Below are positions 1,820-11,800 of a stretch of DNA of 64,000 bases, in pieces. Source of the DNA: Asterias rubens (taxonomy: Eukaryota); assembly GCF_902459465.1 (NCBI RefSeq), contig NC_047067.1, forward strand, positions 20,584,001-20,648,000, written 5' to 3'. Position 1 is the first letter of the stretch. Each line of letters opens with the position of its first letter. Under the pieces are notes generated by a model. It was not told the origin of the DNA. It saw only the letters and a list, made by a program, of their open reading frames with translations, and made no database searches. Both the position numbers and the translations under genes were made by a program.

Positions 1820-2321
1820 AGGCACTGGTTATTAGTGAAACTAATTGTTCGCATAAAACCTTACTTGGTAAAGAGCAATGGAGAATTGTTGATAGTATAA
1901 AACATTGTGAGAAACGGCTTCCTCTGAAGTGACGTAGCTTTTGAGAAAGAAGTAGTAGTCCAGTCTAATTTCTATACCATCCGCCCTGGTAATAGTTAAA
2001 AAGCAGGACAGTTCTTTTCAGAACTGAGAAGTCTCCCGAACCTCCGATTATCTACTCCACGGCAGTAGAATAAAGCAAGACAGTTCCCTAAGAACAACTC
2101 TACCTGGCAAGTAGATACACACATGGTGTTACCGCAAACCAAATATACAAGTATTTTCTCACCAAAATATTTGCATTAAATTTGAGATCTCAGCTGAGCT
2201 CTTGAATGCAATCATCTGAAAGCACTCAACCTTTTGGTTTGTTATTTTATGCATAATTTATGTAGAGATACACCCAGTGAGAAGACAGGTCTTTGACATT
2301 AACTCAAGGTGTACAGTGCTT
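1820..2321. mobile_element. Non-autonomous DNA transposon (Kolobok-like, TTAA-flanked)
   Basis: TTAA at 1816-1819 and 2322-2325; termini AGGCACTG / CAGTGCTT are inverted (7/8 match). Confidence 0.6.
1955..2153 (+). mobile_element. Nested insertion related to the 3' part of the hammerhead-bearing repeat family
   Basis: Flanked by the direct repeat AAGTA (1950-1954, 2149-2153). Contains hairpin CAGTTCT-TTTC-AGAACTG and CATGGTGTTACCGCAAACC, also present near 48410. Confidence 0.5.
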
Positions 2322-3223
2322 TTAAGAACCCATTATTATTATTATTTAATGTGAAATTTAAAGCTCAAAGTCAGATACAAACAAATACTGCAAAGTAGAT
2401 TGACTGTTCTTACTGTTTTTACTTTCCAAACATCGGTCTTTTAGAATCACAATATCAATACTCCCTTTTTACAAAATGTTTAATGATACAAGTTTTTCGA
2501 AGGTCGTGAATGACAAAATAACTTTTGAATTATTTAAGGCAAATTTTGCATCGTAACCATATCTTTGTACTGCAGGTTATGCTCACATCTCTGAAACTTG
2601 ATACCTGTCATCGTACCAATTTTGTGCATAACCAGATTTATTTATTTATTTATTTTATTTATTTTAATTCTTCGGACAAAAAAAAAGCAAAACAATAAAA
2701 AAAAGCAAAACAATAAAACAAGCACAGGCCGTCCAGGGAAGGGCAAAAGTCCAAAAACTGTCATCAAAAAAGATGTGCTCTCCCAGACCTAGCTCATAAA
2801 AAATACACATTATATACTATACATTAAACATTCTAAAATTGCAGTAAAAGTTTTAACAAAAGATGGCAAGTAAAAAGCAATAACACAAACGATAAACACA
2901 AGGTACTTTTTCAAAATGTCCACAGATTCACAACAAACCTACAGGGCCCGAAGACAATGAAGTAGAAAGCCTCCCCCGAAATACCATACACTCCGACGAG
3001 GAACTGCAGCCCCCGAGAAATGAGCAAAACAAGCCACAAAACATATTTCGTCTCAGTGAGATGAACACTATTATAGCATGCAAAAACCCATCAACCAGCC
3101 ATGATATTATATTTGATTTCATGCGTGTTTTTATTTCAACAATTCAATAAGCTTGACGTTTGAAGTTTAAAATTATACTCTTGCCGAAAATGCTTGGATT
3201 TCAGAGTTGTTGATTGAGCTGTA

Positions 3224-4507
3224 TTATAATAACATAAAGAGGTAAATGAAATAACTTAAAAGCCACACCACCAGGAATACTACTAAGAATATATGACCCA
3301 AAAACGAATACCAGAAGTCGTTACCAGAGTTAAGTACTGTCACGTTGTACTTGCGCATTACACTCTCATAAAGTTGAATGAGTCGCTCATCCATTGTCTG
3401 TTTATGGTGAACCGTAATTACAGCAATGCCTTTCTCAAACACCTTCCTGACGAAATATTTACGATAAAGTGAGACGTAAATTTGGAAGCCTTCGCCGTTG
3501 CGAGGCGTTATTCCGGCTCGTTTCATGACTAAGCCAAAGAAGACATCGTCCCATGGTAAGAAGCGAACGTGTACGGACTCCTTGAAGATCGTACTCGCTA
3601 CGTCACTGGACATGACGTAACAGCCACCTGGAAAGAAAGGTGGATAAGTTGGTTCCGGGTACAGTTCAACCGGAGTATACCATTTGTTGCTCGCTCCGTC
3701 CGGATCCCGGTATGGCGTCCAGTTTGTCTTGAGACTTCCTTCAGCATATAGAAGCTTAGGTTTGTCAATCAGACGTTTTACAAGGTTATATACATTTAAC
3801 ATGATATCTGAATCCACACTAGCAACATAAGTAGCTACTGTGCACCATGTACTAGCCCACCGTAAACCCATCATGTTCTTTATGGTAAGGTTAAGGTACG
3901 CATCTGTGAAGTTCTCTTGAATGATATCGTTATACTTGTAACTTTCACGGAATACGCTTCTTTTCACGCCGGCATGAGCGGTCTCACCAAGTAGAAACAT
4001 TGTCAATGTCAGATGATTGGAAACATTCTGTATACTGCCCCAAGTTCGTCGTATTTGCACCCGGTCAAAGAAATCTTCCGGTCTTGTTTTGACGAGAATC
4101 AGTAGAAAAAGTGGCATGTTCCATTTCTTAATCGCCTTGGTACAAGCCTCCTGATTGGTTATTGTAAATTCAAATCCATGTGGATTGATGATCTTCTCAC
4201 TGTACAGTGGCGGATAGACTGTAACATTAATGGATGTACTATTTGGGTTGTCCTGGTGACGAATAGATGACGTAGGCAATTCGGAATAGCCGCCGTTGTC
4301 AACATGAACACGATGACGCGCTTTACGGTGAAACATGAAGCTTGGGTTCATCTCCTGGTCGTGTAGAAGAAGAAACCCCTGGTTAGGTGTGTCCTCCTGG
4401 TCACCGTCGTCTACTCCAGTAGAAATCGTCAGAATCAACCAACTTACTAAATAAAAGCTCAATACAATTGTGCTGAGTATATTGAACTGTCTCGTACCGA
4501 TCCTCAT
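3224..4507 (-). CDS. Intronless GT31-family beta-1,3-glycosyltransferase (B3GALT/B3GNT-like), 427 aa, with C-terminal hydrophobic tail
   Basis: Motifs RVQIRRTWG, DAYLNLTIK, DSD (DxD), YPPFFPGGCYVMS, WDDVFFG. The ATG at 4507 (MRIGTRQ...) precedes an N-terminal signal-anchor and is preferred over the GTG start at 4666. Confidence 0.9.
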   Translation of the reverse strand: MRIGTRQFNILSTIVLSFYLVSWLILTISTGVDDGDQEDTPNQGFLLLHDQEMNPSFMFHRKARHRVHVDNGGYSELPTSSIRHQDNPNSTSINVTVYPPLYSEKIINPHGFEFTITNQEACTKAIKKWNMPLFLLILVKTRPEDFFDRVQIRRTWGSIQNVSNHLTLTMFLLGETAHAGVKRSVFRESYKYNDIIQENFTDAYLNLTIKNMMGLRWASTWCTVATYVASVDSDIMLNVYNLVKRLIDKPKLLYAEGSLKTNWTPYRDPDGASNKWYTPVELYPEPTYPPFFPGGCYVMSSDVASTIFKESVHVRFLPWDDVFFGLVMKRAGITPRNGEGFQIYVSLYRKYFVRKVFEKGIAVITVHHKQTMDERLIQLYESVMRKYNVTVLNSGNDFWYSFLGHIFLVVFLVVWLLSYFIYLFMLL

Positions 4508-6263
4508 ATTGCACTGAAAATAAAGTCCCAAACAGCACTGAAAATGGCTGCCTTGTCTGTTTGTAGTGAATGCGACGTGGAATAGATAATGAAAGGTCGA
4601 CAATATTTGCATACTCCAGTTCATTATGATATACAAAATATTGGCAAAGCAAAATGTAATCCACAAAATACGTGGCAGTCTTCACCTTTGGATTGGTGAT
4701 CCTTGCTCTATGGTGTGTTACTACTGATATTAGGGGATACAGTCATGTTCACTGGGTTCAGTGGTTATGCGTCACTGGGGGGGCGTAAAGGTCATTGCAA
4801 TTAGAGTTTTCCTTCCTGCGTGTATAAGTCTCTTCATGATAACACTAAGTTACCCATAGGGCAGGTCAGATTTAGGTTTGCATACAAGGATTGGGTAAAC
4901 ACAAATACAGTTCCAGTGAAGTTTTATGTTCATTCCTACATTGATGTGTTAATCATTTAAATCATAGAACAAGTAATTAGCTGGAGATGGACTTCAGACT
5001 TTGACTTGCGTTATGATCCCACTGGTCACGTTGCTAGCGGTGCACTCATCACTTCCCATGTGTGTGTTTGTGATTAAACTTCGAAACATCGAAAAGTCTA
5101 ATTATTCGTGAGGCGGACGCCATCTTAGAAACCTTATGCCCAGAGTTCAAGAGTTTTATTAAGTGTGTTAAGTTTTGATTGTAAACTTCTCTTTTAAGAT
5201 TCAATTTATTTTGTTTAACCACTGATTAATAAAATGTGAAAGAGCTGTAACCAGATTGTGTCTGGACAAGAATGGTATAACAGTCTCTTATTAGCGATAC
5301 GACGTGCACGTGAAAATCTGTAATTTATCAATACTTGTTGTGCCACAACCACTATCAATACATGTTAGTTCCATTTGTTCTTGTGTGATGTTATTATTAA
5401 TTTATTGCATACCGGCAGTATACAAAACTAGATCAGGGTATACATTTATATTCAAGTGAACTTCTAGATGCAACTTTGACAATAAAATTATGCCTTTGAA
5501 GACATCTGGATTTAATGTTGCAACCGACGAAGCCCGACGCCTGCCTATAGAATCCGAAAAGAGCAGTTTCAAGTTTCAATAGAGGGCGCTTGTTATGTCC
5601 TTTGCCACGTAGGGCCTACCCTGTATACCACACATATGGACATCTGTATACTGCGACGATAGGATATAACATGAATAATAATGAATACATATACAACAAA
5701 ATCAAAACAAATAATTGTTTGCTTTGTTGCCGATTTAGGTAATTATTTTTTACATTTACCCGAAAATGCGTCCGTCAAAGAAAATAATGTTAAAATAAAA
5801 TATAAATAAATACAAATAATAGGCCTTTGTTAACATGTCTATCATATAATTTTTTTCTTTTCTGGAATTGTCTGTGTGTCGTCACAAAGTAAAAGGAAAG
5901 GCATACAATGTTAAAAATTGGAGGTTTATTTGCGTGGACCATTATTTTCTACTGAACACATGCACTCACCTGAAGGCATAATGCCCCTTTAAATTCAATT
6001 CAACTCGTGCGAAACGGCATCAGTGCAGTGTGATGGGGATGTATGAAGATTAGTTTTTTTAATGGATTTGTGCTATAGCAGTTTGATGTGTATTATATTT
6101 TGAATCTCAAGGGCGATTGCAATAATTGTCGCGATAGAACAGCTGCGCCATCTTGGTGTATTCAACCACCATCACGTGTATGTGGCTTCAACAAAATTAC
6201 TGTACTTATACTATTACCTATGTGGACCTGAGGTTAAGGTTGCGGTCATAGAGGAACACCAAT

Positions 6264-7364
6264 ATGTACACTCTGATCAGAAAGAAACTGAAATTCCTCA
6301 TAACATCATGTGCAATATGCTCCGTCGTTTTATGGTTATTTGATAAGGAATTAATGGTGGAAACGAACGACGGGTCGGTGTACAGCGACGACGTGATAAA
6401 TGCACACGATTTCCATTTTACCATTGCGAACTATGACAAATGCTGGAATGGCACCGACGCAACGATGACCCCATTCCTTCTCATACTCGTGAAAACAGGT
6501 CCACAGAACTTCTACGATCGCCAGCAGATTCGCCGGACATGGGGAGGAACGAAGATGGTTCTGAATGAACTGGTATCCACCATGTTTTTACTAGGGATGA
6601 GCAGTGATATGGAGTTAAACCAACGCATTACTAAGGAGAGTCAAGAATATGAAGATATTGTGCAAGAGAATTTCTTTGATTCCTATCATAATCTGACTAT
6701 TAAGATCATGATGGGATTGAAATGGGTCGCTACATTCTGCTCTAATGTATCCTATGTAGCGAGTGCAGATGCTGATATAATGTTAAATACAGTCAACCTT
6801 GTTAATCGGTTATTAAGTAAACCACGCAAGAGGTACGCTGAAGGTACCCGTATGAGAAATGTGGTACCAGTGAGGGACCCAAACGCACATAACGGCAAAT
6901 GGTATACTCCGTTTGAGTTGTACCCAGACCCGACGTATGCACCATTCTTCCCTGGTTCATGCTACGTGATGTCCGGTGATTTAGCCTGGTGGATCTTTCT
7001 GGAGTCCAGAAAGGTGAGGTATCTACCATGGGACGATGTCTTCTTTGGACTAGTCTTGCAGAGACTAGGTGTTGATCCAGCACACGGCGCGGGGTACGGT
7101 CTGTATGTCAAACTATCCAGAAATTTGACAATAACGTCAGTTTTAATGAAGGGAATTGGAGTATTGATACCTCACCGGGAAAATAGTACTGATGAAAGAT
7201 TGTTGCAATTGTGGAATCAAACTATGGCATTAAGCGAGCGTCGAATAATCAACTCTACCAACAGAGATGTGTCACTAGTACTATGCGGCATCATTTTGTT
7301 TTCTATACTTCTCATAATTTTCATTTTGGGATTCTTTTATATACTGGTATCGTTTAGTTTTTAG
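6264..7364 (+). CDS. Intronless GT31-family beta-1,3-glycosyltransferase, 366 aa, paralog of the previous gene, with C-terminal hydrophobic tail
   Basis: Motifs RQQIRRTWG, DSYHNLTIK, DAD (DxD), YAPFFPGSCYVMS, WDDVFFG. Basic residues plus a hydrophobic N-terminal signal-anchor. Confidence 0.92.
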   Translation: MYTLIRKKLKFLITSCAICSVVLWLFDKELMVETNDGSVYSDDVINAHDFHFTIANYDKCWNGTDATMTPFLLILVKTGPQNFYDRQQIRRTWGGTKMVLNELVSTMFLLGMSSDMELNQRITKESQEYEDIVQENFFDSYHNLTIKIMMGLKWVATFCSNVSYVASADADIMLNTVNLVNRLLSKPRKRYAEGTRMRNVVPVRDPNAHNGKWYTPFELYPDPTYAPFFPGSCYVMSGDLAWWIFLESRKVRYLPWDDVFFGLVLQRLGVDPAHGAGYGLYVKLSRNLTITSVLMKGIGVLIPHRENSTDERLLQLWNQTMALSERRIINSTNRDVSLVLCGIILFSILLIIFILGFFYILVSFSF

Positions 7365-8514
7365 AGTTCATGTTTTGACTTTTTTCTCTCGCCGATTGTT
7401 TCTACTCAACATGTAAAACACAATCCTTTTCGAATTGTCTGTAAAAGGTGCAAACCTTTAAGACACAATAAAAGAAGTTCTACGCATTCAAACCACATAG
7501 AAATCATCTTCAAGAAATTATTGATTTCATAAAAAGGTGGCTAGTTAATGGAATGTTTGGTATCCAATTTAGTTTTGTTTTTGTGTATGTTGTTCCCAGG
7601 ATCTTTCATCTGTATTATTATAAACATAATGGACAATTGGTGATCAATGGTTTATACAGAGTATGCTTATAGTCCAATATCGATTATCTGTAAAATGATC
7701 AATAATGAACGATAAGTGAGCAATGGTCTCTAAAACAGTTTAGGTCCCACTGACTTAGGCCTATTATGATCACTCAAAGTTTGTTTATAGAGGTATATTG
7801 GACACAATCATGTTCAAAAAAGCAAGATTGAAAAACTTACATGAATTTTGGGAAATATTTATTACATTGTACACGACAAGACGAATAAAAATAAACTCTA
7901 TTTGTTAAAATATTGAAATCACACGTAGCACCTTTACTACAATATAAGCTCTTGATTTCTTTAATCGGCATGTTACTAATTACAAAACGTCTCATTTATA
8001 TACACAAAGCTACACATGAACTTAAAAGTATTAACATATTATTTCAATACAATATTTACATACTCTACATGGAGATCTAAACTACGGTAAAATCACCTTT
8101 TTATAGGCGAGTAAATTGAAATACACTCACGCGACATAAAACACAGCAACAATTTACCGATTTAAGTATAACTATTTTATTTCTACATCTTATCCCACAA
8201 ACACTTATGAGCCTCGTTTGCAATTTAGCTTTACATTGTTTTAAACACAAAACACTTACTCAATATCAAAACTTTAAACGTTACAACTCCCTTACGTAAT
8301 TACGTTGAATACGTTTCATATCGAAACGTTTTAGACACTTTAAACGTAAAAATATGTATACTAAAGCGTAGATACATATACGCTATACAAGACTTCGATA
8401 TTTAATAGTATTATACTTGGGACATAATGACACTCTCACAGTGTTTCCTGTGCTATTATCCTTTCCAGAAGCAAACAATTGAAGTTTTCCTGTCACTAGA
8501 TTCACGTCACACTG

Positions 8515-8815: not shown

Positions 8816-11800
8816 TTATTTACACAAATGAAGTTCTTCTCTTGCGATACATTCCTTACAGATGACTTCACAACACCATTGGAATCTACACTCACATCTC
8901 TTGGTAACTAGTACACTGCGTATGTTATAACCCCTACCACAGCAAATGCTACCACAGTTCCAATCCTTATCACACTGTCTGCCCCTTGTGCCCATCGTGT
9001 ACGGACTAGCCTCGCAAAAGTCCGGCGACCGATCGATGTAGACCAGGTCGTGCTTACCGGGGCCTGAGCGTGAAACAACGGGGGAGTTAGTCAGAGGAGT
9101 GGCTGGTGTCCGCTTAGGGGGTTTCCGTCTTCGTTTGACGTGTCGTACCAGTTCGTTAGCACCATGTGCAGTATTAGCAAGTTCGACCATAACGGCTCTA
9201 TCGTATATAGCTTTTAAAAGTTTCCCCGTCTCTTGAAGACGGTTCAATTGATGCCAACATGTCTCGGATGTACACGATCCAGAAACGCCATGACACTTGC
9301 AAACCTTTCTTGCGCTCTCCTCAACAACCTGTGACGGACACAAAGGAAAATAATGTATTTTTAAACTGAACGACATGGTATAACGGCCGAATACAGTAAG
9401 CACTCGTTGCGAGGTGATTTATTTTTAATTCCTTTACAGTGTGTCATTGCCAGTATAATGATATAGCGCCCTCTGTTTGCACGTCTCGTCACCGTTCAGG
9501 CTTTCCCTCGGATTGAGTTCTTGTTTGCATCGAACTATCGCGCAAAAGCAAAAAGTGATCGATATCAAATAAACGTTGAAATGGAAATCAAACTATTCCA
9601 GAAGTGACATTAAGATTTTAAAATGTGTCATTCGAAAACTTTGAAATATTGACCAAAAACTTGTTTCAAAACGTCCCTTCCCGAAAGCAGATTTCCATGT
9701 CGATATGTCAAAAGAGCTGCCAAAGTCTTTGGGTAAAGCAACAACAAATCCTGCAGAGGCCTGTAAGAGAAGAACATACGAGCCATGCAAAAATGCGTTT
9801 TCATTTGTGCTGGTTTTGATTGGTTCTTGTTTTTGTTTTAGTTGGGTGTGAAAGTTTGTTTTATTTTGTTTTGGTAAACATACATTTTGTTCAACACTGT
9901 TCTGCTTAAAAAAATGTTAAACTTTACCTGTGCATAATTCTGTACTACCAAGTAAAGCCCTGGTTAAACTTACCCTAATTCCTAGATTCGTATTATGTCT
10001 GTCAATCTTTGCCCTGACGTCTCTACTTCGAGGTAGATCTCCCTTCTTAGGCATGAGAAATCTCTCCACAAACTTCTGACTATATTTAAGATTGTCTCCA
10101 CATCCTCCCCATTTCCAAGTATCTCTATTGGTTTCTTCAGAATAGTAGCTTGTGTCGCATGAACATCTCTCCATGTTACCTTGACTACAGGCCTTGGCTA
10201 CGGAGTAGGTTAAACCAGCTGATGAGATGGCGTACAGAAATGCCGTCTCCCTCATCCCTGCGTATAAGAAGCAATGGAAATTGATGAATATTCATGATGT
10301 ATTCATACGTCATGGCCAGTGACCCTTCACCTGTTGAGTTTGTCCCAACATTGCGACGTCCAGTTATGTTCAACGTGTGTCTTTTGTGGAGACCGCAAGA
10401 TATGTTCTCAGGCAGTTTTATTTTGTGAAATGTACTTCGTTAAAAACACAATGATTTAAATTAAGTGTATTGAAAGTATTATTTCCCCAAAACCCTACAA
10501 GTAGATCTTTTAAAATTTGTGCTGCCAAAATCTTAAGTTTTCTTCAATCTGCTTTTCAGTAGTAGTCCCATATATCCATTTCCTTGTTCAGATGTTACAC
10601 TACCAGAAGTTAGTGTTCAATCATTTATGTTGGTTGATTCCATATTCAGTGTGGTGAGGAGGCAGGAATGTTAATTGTATCTGATTAAACACAAACAAAG
10701 CATAAAACACAGAGAAATTGACATAAATTGGAACATCGAGGATGCGCGGTTAACCACATAAGAACCGCTTGAGACTTGGCGTCATTAATCATTCTTTATT
10801 AACATAAAACATCAAAGGATCGGCTCATTAAACATGTGATTTTGATTATTTGTTTTATTTTGTTTTCAAACCCCTTCTAAGAAAAATTGTTTCATGTGGT
10901 CCTTTACTTGAAACAATATGCTTCTAGTTGACTGGAATTGTTTATACATCAGTGAACATGTTACTTTATAAATGTATTTACCGCCTCTACTCTTATTCGT
11001 TATTCAAAATAAATATATATTCGGTCATCTGGTTTATACTGACCAACTCATAATATTATAATGAAGACTGGGTCAAACTTCATCTTTGAAAAGTTAATAT
11101 AGAAGTATAATATAAGAACAAACTGAACAATGAATACAATAATAAATTACTGGAAATACAAATTACTTTAAGAAGAATCAATTTACACTTTGTTCTCCAA
11201 TTGCAAAGATTCTCAAGAATCAAAGGGAAAAGTGAAACTCTTTCAAATTCAAATTCCTCTTTCCCAAAATGTCTAAACTTTCTTGTATTCTCTGGGCAAA
11301 TACCATTGTTGGGGGTTTTCATCTAAAATTTGGGTCAAGTCCACATAAGACGTGGTGCCGTCGGCGACTCTCTTTTGAGAGCGGCTTCCAATAAAGCAGC
11401 AGACCATGTTTTATGGGAGATAGTCGCGTAGTAAATTTGGCGGATGATTTAATGCATTATGACTTTTATGTCTTGCCAATTGAAACAGCCGTGTCCAACT
11501 GCTGTAATGAGCGGAGACCACCACTGCAAGATCCAGACTAAACTGTCCTTAAGCAACACAGAAAGAAACTTAAGCTCAAAGGGTTTGCTGCTTAGCAATT
11601 GCTCTAAAGGAATTGTAACCAGTCACAACAAGTGTACATTACTCGATGTTTTTGCTGGTAACAAGCTTTGGCCGGGCGGACTTTCTGTCTTTCGCAGGTT
11701 TTTTTCCATAACAATTATTGTCTTAAAAATTTAAATAAAATAAATAAAAAAAAGCTCAGCATAAATCCACTTTTTTTTTTCAACGATCATTTGGCAACCT

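Follow-up and report, generated by a model that had tools for sequence, protein, structure and literature searches.

How is a glycosyltransferase of family GT31 held in its membrane when the polypeptide ends, as well as begins, in a hydrophobic segment? The question is raised by a 64,000-nucleotide stretch of the sea star Asterias rubens (NCBI RefSeq assembly GCF_902459465.1, contig NC_047067.1, positions 20,584,001 to 20,648,000 of the forward strand), the whole of which is hereinafter referred to as the window. A head-to-head pair of intronless GT31 genes, gene 1 on the minus strand and gene 2 on the plus strand, was found in the window (Table 1), and no further GT31 copy was detected in the 64 kb. 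The original prediction for this locus, made from the letters alone, described a divergent pair of GT31 paralogues with a second membrane anchor at the C-terminus, either double-anchored or linked to glycosylphosphatidylinositol (GPI). Both open reading frames (ORFs), the quoted tail peptides and their coordinates proved to be correct, and the opposite strands and 52% identity between the two proteins across 296 residues agreed with a divergent paralogous pair. On sequence comparison, we favour the reading that both genes belong to a sea-star-specific expansion that gained a second, C-terminal transmembrane (TM) helix. The encoded enzymes are probably anchored as lumen-facing hairpins, with both ends predicted to be cytosolic.

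The C-terminal segment of gene 2 (7269-7364, stop codon included) reads VSLVLCGIILFSILLIIFILGFFYILVSFSF and follows the residues NSTNRD, and that of gene 1 (3224-3316) reads FWYSFLGHIFLVVFLVVWLLSYFIYLFMLL and follows NSGND. No charged or amide residue was found in either tail (31 and 30 residues, respectively) up to the stop. Both proteins therefore depart from the classical type II layout, in which a single N-terminal anchor is combined with a free luminal C-terminus, since a second hydrophobic helix ends each of them. As had been claimed, the tails diverge in sequence and keep their property, with 20% identity between the tails vs 54% between the bodies. Insertion energies were summed crudely on the Hessa scale, as a rough guide and not as a validated predictor: the sums were -4.0 kcal/mol for the gene 1 tail, -6.0 kcal/mol for the gene 2 tail, and -2.2 to -6.0 kcal/mol for the tails overall. 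By the same sums, two classic TM anchors (glycophorin A and VSV-G) reached about -3 kcal/mol, and four textbook GPI tails lay at +1 to +7 kcal/mol. Efficient GPI signals are said, in the title of a 2012 article by Galian and colleagues (cited in PMC9520029), to be of marginal hydrophobicity. In AlphaFold2 (AF2) models, built with a 70-sequence alignment, the last catalytic helix of gene 2 extends unbroken as far as the C-terminus (residues 311-365; predicted local distance difference test, pLDDT, 93-98), and a similarly unbroken helix was modelled in gene 1 (residues 413-465, pLDDT 83-95).

Transcript evidence was obtained from assembled contigs of four public runs, placed on positions 2300-8200 of the window. 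For gene 2, one run provided a 2375-nt contig that follows the genome colinearly from 6186 past position 8200; beginning 78 nt before the ATG, it passes the stop into the 3' untranslated region (UTR). For gene 1, a 2294-nt contig from another run was colinear over 3082-5374 and covers the whole gene with its stop. The 3' ends of both genes are thus supported by RNA as uninterrupted, and the tails are not spliced out in these contigs. No splice junction touching either tail was found in the RNA contigs of the four runs, from which minor spliced forms could have escaped, since assembled contigs lose rare isoforms. RNA depth was zero or near zero at about 5450-6040 in all four runs; in the spacer between the genes, short low-depth contigs extended to about 5657, and one run showed a depth of 1.5 in the 5649-5845 bin. 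In addition, the depths of gene 1 and gene 2 differed in opposite directions between runs. Because of the silent interval and these opposite changes, the contigs represent RNA and not contaminating DNA.

The distribution of the second helix was surveyed by an exhaustive profile search, which returned 13,881 relatives; 268 of at least 250 aa were fetched and examined. A hydrophobic C-terminal segment was present in 25 of the 268 and confined to two clades of the tree. None of 500 label shuffles was as clustered as the observed distribution, and the restriction of the 25 bearers to two clades indicates that the helix is more than a chance feature. The first set of bearers (group A) belongs to an expansion of 33 rows that contains sea stars only and has an acorn-worm (hemichordate) sequence as its sister. 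Within it, four asteroid gene groups, drawn from the genera Asterias, Patiria, and Acanthaster, have the helix at an identical position in the alignment. The first gene group comprises gene 2, A. amurensis P0001, P0002, Patiria P0003, and Acanthaster P0345; the second, gene 1, Patiria P0005, and Acanthaster P0011; the third, Patiria P0008 and Acanthaster P0010; and the fourth, A. rubens P0050, A. amurensis P0179, Patiria P0013, and Acanthaster P0014. Since all gene groups except P0008/P0010 span Asterias and Patiria/Acanthaster, the helix is older than the split of the two sea-star orders. Gene 2 shares 95% identity with the 366-aa A. amurensis protein P0001, the whole locus aligns at 94.7% to A. 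amurensis chromosome CP134958.1, and the head-to-head arrangement was also identified in A. amurensis and Patiria (P0005 reversed beside P0003 forward). Hydrophobic C-termini were retained in the orthologues; neither their loss nor removal of the tails from transcripts, both named in the original prediction as refuting outcomes, was borne out for this genome. In the crinoid and sea-urchin relatives sampled, the second helix was not found. The crinoid protein P0046 was considered as a bearer and rejected, as its internal helix is the N-terminal anchor of a second tandem copy fused in the gene model.

The second set of bearers (group B) forms a separate clade (support 100) of the annelids Paralvinella and Dimorphilus and unnamed marine sequences. 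In 21 of its 22 full-length members, an N-terminal anchor and the GT31 domain are followed by a conserved Cys, then by a helix 13-22 residues long, and finally by a basic tail. The annelid helix probably represents a gain independent of that in sea stars. Separately, proteins in which a single N-terminal anchor precedes 4-7 GT31 domains were observed among the top profile matches (P0039-P0049), one example being Ptychodera flava XP_070547541.1 (2159 aa); these may be true multi-domain enzymes or fused tandem gene models.

Several sea-star members continue beyond the helix. Patiria P0003, the orthologue of gene 2, is encoded by a single exon and carries after the helix a 24-aa tail with 7 Lys/Arg. 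Patiria P0008, also encoded by a single exon, ends in the helix followed by KCRQDESDLDDYESDDSFVD, a 20-residue acidic tail that is conserved in Acanthaster P0010, and P0013 likewise has a single exon encoding helix and tail. As P0003 and P0008/P0010 carry charged, presumably cytosolic tails after the helix, the ancestral segment is considered to have been membrane-spanning. Other members lack such a tail: the hydrophobic run of the three A. rubens paralogues, P0002, and Acanthaster P0345 ends at the stop. No relic of a cytosolic tail was seen downstream of the stops of gene 1 and gene 2. The P0008 tail and its P0010 counterpart, KCKEDEADLDGYESDDSMI, contain conserved acidic clusters with Ser and Tyr and resemble the trans-Golgi network/endosome signals that sort furin and other type I proteins.

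In the hairpin that we favour, the N-terminal signal-anchor would start translocation and the catalytic domain would fold in the lumen of the endoplasmic reticulum (ER) or Golgi, after which the C-terminal helix of 30-31 residues would act as a stop-transfer segment and enter the bilayer at termination. The enzyme would then be tied at both ends, with the rigid helix pressing the fold against the luminal face of the membrane; the enzyme is expected to be held tightly to the membrane because this helix is continuous with the last catalytic helix. In Asterias, in which the cytosolic tail of the Patiria orthologues is absent, the helix alone would serve as the anchor. A second anchor would also block release of the enzyme by SPPL3-type cleavage in the N-terminal anchor or stem, and an active site kept close to the membrane would be well placed for acceptors in its vicinity, for example glycolipids.

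The alternative raised by the original prediction, in which the C-terminal segment is a GPI signal cut within NSTN or NSGN, would make at least the tail-less Asterias forms lipid-linked and possibly cell-surface enzymes, and we rate it as unlikely. As in GPI-anchored precursors, the hydrophobic C-terminus of the tail-less proteins listed above reaches the stop without a cytosolic tail, and small residues (N, S, G, or D) stand just upstream. In the published pattern (PMC10491789), an unstructured linker precedes the omega residue (the lipid acceptor), which is small, as is the residue at omega+2; a spacer of 8-12 residues, hydrophilic in character, then leads to a hydrophobic stretch of 15-20 residues. 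The small omega and omega+2 residues are provided by NST and NSG, and the pattern as a whole is loosely matched if the first ~10 residues of the run are counted as spacer, with the best fit in P0002 (STN, then REMPLIQFGN and 22 hydrophobic residues) and in gene 1. In contrast to GPI signals, the Asterias tails show no hydrophilic spacer, only 0-3 polar residues lying between the small patch and the run of 30-31 residues, and in gene 2 most of the would-be spacer consists of hydrophobic residues. At 28-31 residues, the segments are also longer and more hydrophobic (-4 to -6 kcal/mol by the crude sums, vs +1 to +7 kcal/mol for textbook signals). AF2 modelled no flexible linker before the candidate omega, the last fold helix entering the tail directly. 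Further, a single exon of the orthologue P0003 encodes both the helix and a basic tail behind it, unlike a GPI signal, the N-terminus of the proteins resembles an uncleaved anchor, and NSGN of gene 1 reads NYGN in A. amurensis. Of the proposed omega-like residues, the small NST and NSG were thus confirmed upstream of the tails, and the gene 1 motif was found altered to NYG in A. amurensis; of the two anchoring modes proposed, the double anchor is favoured by the charged Patiria tails and by hydrophobicity and length, and GPI linkage was weakened.

The N-terminal segments bear on another arrangement, in which the N-terminal stretch is cleaved in some members and a type I enzyme is left on the C-terminal helix alone. 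UDP-glucuronosyltransferases are type I proteins that use a C-terminal helix as their anchor. The N-terminal stretches are short in gene 2 (16 aa) and in P0008/P0010 (12-17 aa, with a Leu/Ala-rich core and then C-T-S), the C-terminal helix is by far the stronger membrane segment, and the acidic-cluster tail of P0008/P0010 is typical of type I sorting signals. On the other side, equivalent N-terminal segments occur in relatives that lack the C-terminal helix, and the family is type II; the N-terminal hydrophobic run of gene 1 is 22 residues long, and no convincing cleavage site with small residues at -3 and -1 was found after the stretch in gene 2. Such an exchange of anchors is, in our view, improbable. 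According to AF2, only about 14 residues form the stem behind the anchor of gene 2, and the anchor of gene 1 (helix 44-69 in the 466-aa form) is followed by a disordered stem at residues 71-123, about 55 residues. For the translation start of gene 1, three candidates were identified: TTG (480 aa), ATG at 4624 (466 aa), and ATG at 4507 (MRIGTRQF..., 427 aa). Homologue N-termini align at MRIGT, and the 39 extra residues from ATG 4624 were modelled poorly by AF2. On its 5' side, the transcript contig of gene 1 reaches some 700 nt beyond the first in-frame ATG (4624-5374, minus strand). This portion may correspond to a long 5' leader or to an unrecognised upstream exon like that of the A. amurensis model, the coding sequence (CDS) of which starts about 130 nt further upstream.

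Selection on the tails was examined by comparison of nonsynonymous (dN) and synonymous (dS) divergence between A. rubens and A. amurensis. For gene 2, dN and dS were 0.014 and 0 in the tail and 0.022 and 0.055 in the body; 30 of the 31 tail residues are identical, and the tail is conserved like the body. For gene 1, the corresponding values were 0.141 and 0.17 in the tail and 0.018 and 0.071 in the body. The changes in the gene 1 tail stayed within hydrophobic and aromatic residues, and this retention of property, weak evidence when taken alone, agrees with the deep conservation of the helix. Between the two orders, tail identity was 19-30% vs 55-62% for the bodies, with the hydrophobic character kept.

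Within one gene group, the RefSeq models differ as to whether the helix is coding. In the A. amurensis genome, the gene 1 tail is in frame with the same stop (GHIFLVVFLVVYLLSYFICWFILL), and the RefSeq model places a donor after GHIFL and joins it to a KTN-stop micro-exon about 1.1 kb downstream. At the position of this acceptor AG, A. rubens reads AT. At 3344 and 3396, RNA contigs of what we call organism B carry variants specific to A. amurensis, and across the supposed intron their depth equals that of the exon. Loss of the gene 1 tail in A. amurensis (P0343) was considered and rejected, as the tail ORF is present in the genome and it is the RefSeq model that splices it out. The Acanthaster P0011 model splices at CAAAAG|GTATGT just before the helix, and a straight read of the genome ends in FTFWYLTV; the straight read of Patiria P0005 ends in FIFWYVTV, and its model splices after the helix to an exon encoding an acidic tail. 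Straight genomic reads of A. amurensis, Acanthaster, and Patiria thus keep the gene-1-type helix in frame in all cases. The helix is a genomic constant of these loci, and the sequence that follows it, and perhaps its retention, may depend on splicing. The downstream exon used by the Patiria P0005 model is a mini-exon conserved between Acanthaster (L004, 3655/5379) and Patiria (L007, 3790/7255), ending in CEGTPMTDLEPIISVL and IASDEEICPDPVEITAVL, respectively; its donor lies before the helix in the Acanthaster model and after the helix in the Patiria model. Alternative 3' splicing at gene-1-type loci may decide both the presence of the helix and that of a cytosolic tail. That the tail is a misread T-rich 3' sequence was rejected in view of its in-frame conservation in four genomes and its inclusion in RNA contigs.

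These data also bear on the view that the tail is tolerated as a largely neutral or dispensable extension, or arose in gene modelling, and that it is unimportant for the enzyme and removed in many transcripts. Such a view would accommodate the RefSeq models XP_071791627.1 (A. amurensis) and P0011 (Acanthaster), which splice the tail out, the decay of the helix in Patiria P0007, and the dN/dS of about 0.8 in the gene 1 tail. It accords poorly with the occurrence of the tail in frame with a nearby stop in all genomes examined, in four gene groups and two asteroid orders, and with the gene 2 tail, the conservation of which equals that of the body. Moreover, both tails lie within uninterrupted A. 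rubens RNA contigs, the organism B RNA covers the supposed intron, and A. rubens has AT in place of the acceptor AG of A. amurensis. We regard this explanation as very improbable.

Several observations weigh against the hairpin. All TM assignments rest on hydropathy and AF2, and the localisation, activity, and functional consequences of the two-anchor form are inferred. The tails of Asterias and of some valvatids (to which Patiria and Acanthaster belong) reach the stop without cytosolic residues or a flanking positive charge, which is GPI-like, and small residues (NSTN, NSGN, and NGDD) precede the three Asterias tails. In at least one paralogue, Patiria P0007, the helix has decayed, with stops and a frameshifted relic. 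The helix is perhaps optional, given that the RefSeq models of A. amurensis and Acanthaster splice it out. In addition, sequence evolution in the gene 1 tail is nearly neutral, with the dN/dS noted above, and random substitution at equal density left it free of stops and charges in about 10% of cases (p ~0.10), so that the retention of its property reaches no more than weak significance.

It is conceivable, although doubtful, that in the tail-less forms (Asterias and Acanthaster P0345) the ancestral TM helix was converted to a GPI signal or, alternatively, that the helix is toggled by alternative 3' splicing. The toggle is suggested by the donor positions, which differ among species' models and occur before, inside, and after the helix. 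Conversion to a GPI signal would yield a lipid-anchored GT31 enzyme able to reach the cell surface, and a splicing toggle would yield anchored and sheddable isoforms of one enzyme. A related idea, that only Asterias has tail-less helices and that its whole lineage might thus have switched to GPI, was rejected, as Acanthaster P0345 and the gene-1-type genomic reads of Acanthaster and Patiria are tail-less too.

The coordinates of the pair are listed in Table 1. Membership in CAZy family GT31 was confirmed for both proteins by matches to PF01762 (136 and 137 bits vs a cut-off of 23). The motifs IRRTWG, DxD (D169/D171; DAD in gene 2 and DSD in gene 1), and WDDVFFG were invariant or nearly so in the family alignment (A1). 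The pLDDT of the AF2 models was 93.8 for gene 2 and 83.7 for gene 1. In a Foldseek search with the gene 2 model, human B3GalT5 (8zwp) was the best match (E 7e-28), followed by B3GNT2, and the TM-score against 8zwp was 0.84-0.88, normalised to the 8zwp chain. A phmmer search of gene 2 against PDB sequences likewise retrieved B3GALT5, at 2e-43. Both proteins are GT31 enzymes of B3GALT type, and they look catalytically intact. The names 'B3GALT1-like' are automatic annotations, and beta-1,3-glycosyl transfer is the predicted activity. Protein-atlas look-ups returned the family name and nothing further.

Table 1. Features of the GT31 gene pair, in window positions
Feature	Position	Strand	Description	Evidence
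Gene 1 (WIN1) ORF	3224-4666	-	480 aa from TTG	PF01762, 1.8e-39
Gene 1 N-terminal hydrophobic anchor	4421-4486	-	FNILSTIVLSFYLVSWLILTIS, 22 aa, after R/R	hydropathy; AF2
Gene 1 Galactosyl_T core	3497-4063	-	DxD motif D-S-D at 3806-3814	Pfam match
Gene 1 C-terminal hydrophobic helix	3227-3316	-	30 uncharged residues; stop 3224-3226	hydropathy; AF2; RNA
Intergenic spacer, presumed bidirectional promoter region	5375-6185			long contigs stop at 5374 and resume at 6186
Gene 2 (WIN2) CDS	6264-7364	+	366 aa, single exon	PF01762, 8.5e-40
Gene 2 N-terminal anchor	6294-6341	+	FLITSCAICSVVLWLF, 16 aa, after basic MYTLIRKKLK	AF2 helix 2-30
Gene 2 Galactosyl_T core	6519-7085	+	DxD motif D-A-D at 6768-6776	Pfam match
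Gene 2 C-terminal hydrophobic helix	7269-7361	+	31 uncharged residues; stop 7362-7364	hydropathy; AF2; RNA

In the surroundings of the pair, a 467-bp stretch (2644-3110), about 110 bp downstream of the gene 1 stop, was without counterpart in A. amurensis, where the flanks are contiguous (L003, 5139-5147). In all RNA/unknown runs, its assembler word depths were 10^3-10^4. A dispersed repeat of very high copy number seems to have been inserted here, in or beside the 3' UTR, specifically in A. rubens. No local repeats were found around the pair, and a search of 2300-8300 against Rfam gave no match. On the minus strand at 8816-9403, a 195-aa ORF gave a Wnt-family match (PF00110, 4.6e-46) that covers the C-terminal half; this ORF is the last coding exon of a Wnt gene, about 1.5 kb past the gene 2 stop and convergent with gene 2.

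Golgi glycosyltransferases are type II proteins, whose single N-terminal anchor governs sorting as well as release by SPPL3, which cleaves the anchor and sheds the enzymes, tuning glycosylation (PMC7366577). The closest characterised relatives of the sea-star pair, vertebrate B3GALT1/2/5 and B3GNT2 (8zwp, 6wmm, 7jhi), share with it the Pfam family, the motifs RxxIRxTWG, DxD, and (E/D)DVxxG, the GT-A fold, an N-terminal basic stretch and anchor, and an intronless CDS. In contrast, the vertebrate enzymes end a few residues past the last fold helix, which the sea-star pair extends by 30-31 hydrophobic residues. Fish B3GALT1 ends opposite residue ~328 of gene 2, and among the top 30 cluster representatives in the AlphaFold database none aligned past residue 347 of the gene 2 model. 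A C-terminal TM segment in GT31 was not described in the full-text literature that was searched, and the C-terminus is not mentioned in a GT31 phylogeny (PMC8022947). The literature searched thus agrees with the claim that the topology is not known for the family, and the annelid clade, which has the same layout, shows that it is not limited to echinoderms. We regard the pair as a real architectural variant, conserved and expressed, of a well-known enzyme family. If the hairpin is correct, the second anchor joined to the last fold helix would be a natural experiment, in which the enzyme could not be shed by N-anchor cleavage and its active site would be fixed at the membrane.

The annelid proteins (Paralvinella palmiformis KAK2169305.1 and Dimorphilus gyrociliatus CAD5124121.1) share the N-anchor, GT31 domain, and C-helix layout at 23-31% identity to the sea-star proteins and are annotated as 'Hexosyltransferase' or hypothetical. 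Unlike in sea stars, their helix is shorter, always followed by a basic tail, and preceded by the conserved Cys. As the second helix was conserved in two sea-star orders and arose again in annelids, a recurring selective advantage may be supposed, possibly in the modification of glycolipids in the membrane. Unusual gangliosides are a known feature of sea stars (PMC8228791), and a link of these to the present enzymes is speculation. The nearest topological analogue is GlcNAc-1-phosphotransferase (GNPTAB), the precursor of which is a type III Golgi protein with two TM domains (PMC4498157). Its alpha/beta precursor has the hairpin topology proposed here for the sea-star GT31 enzymes, although it differs in its unrelated fold, its length (1256 aa), its cleavage to two subunits by site-1 protease, and the ER-export motifs in its tails; the likeness is one of mode of working and not of ancestry.

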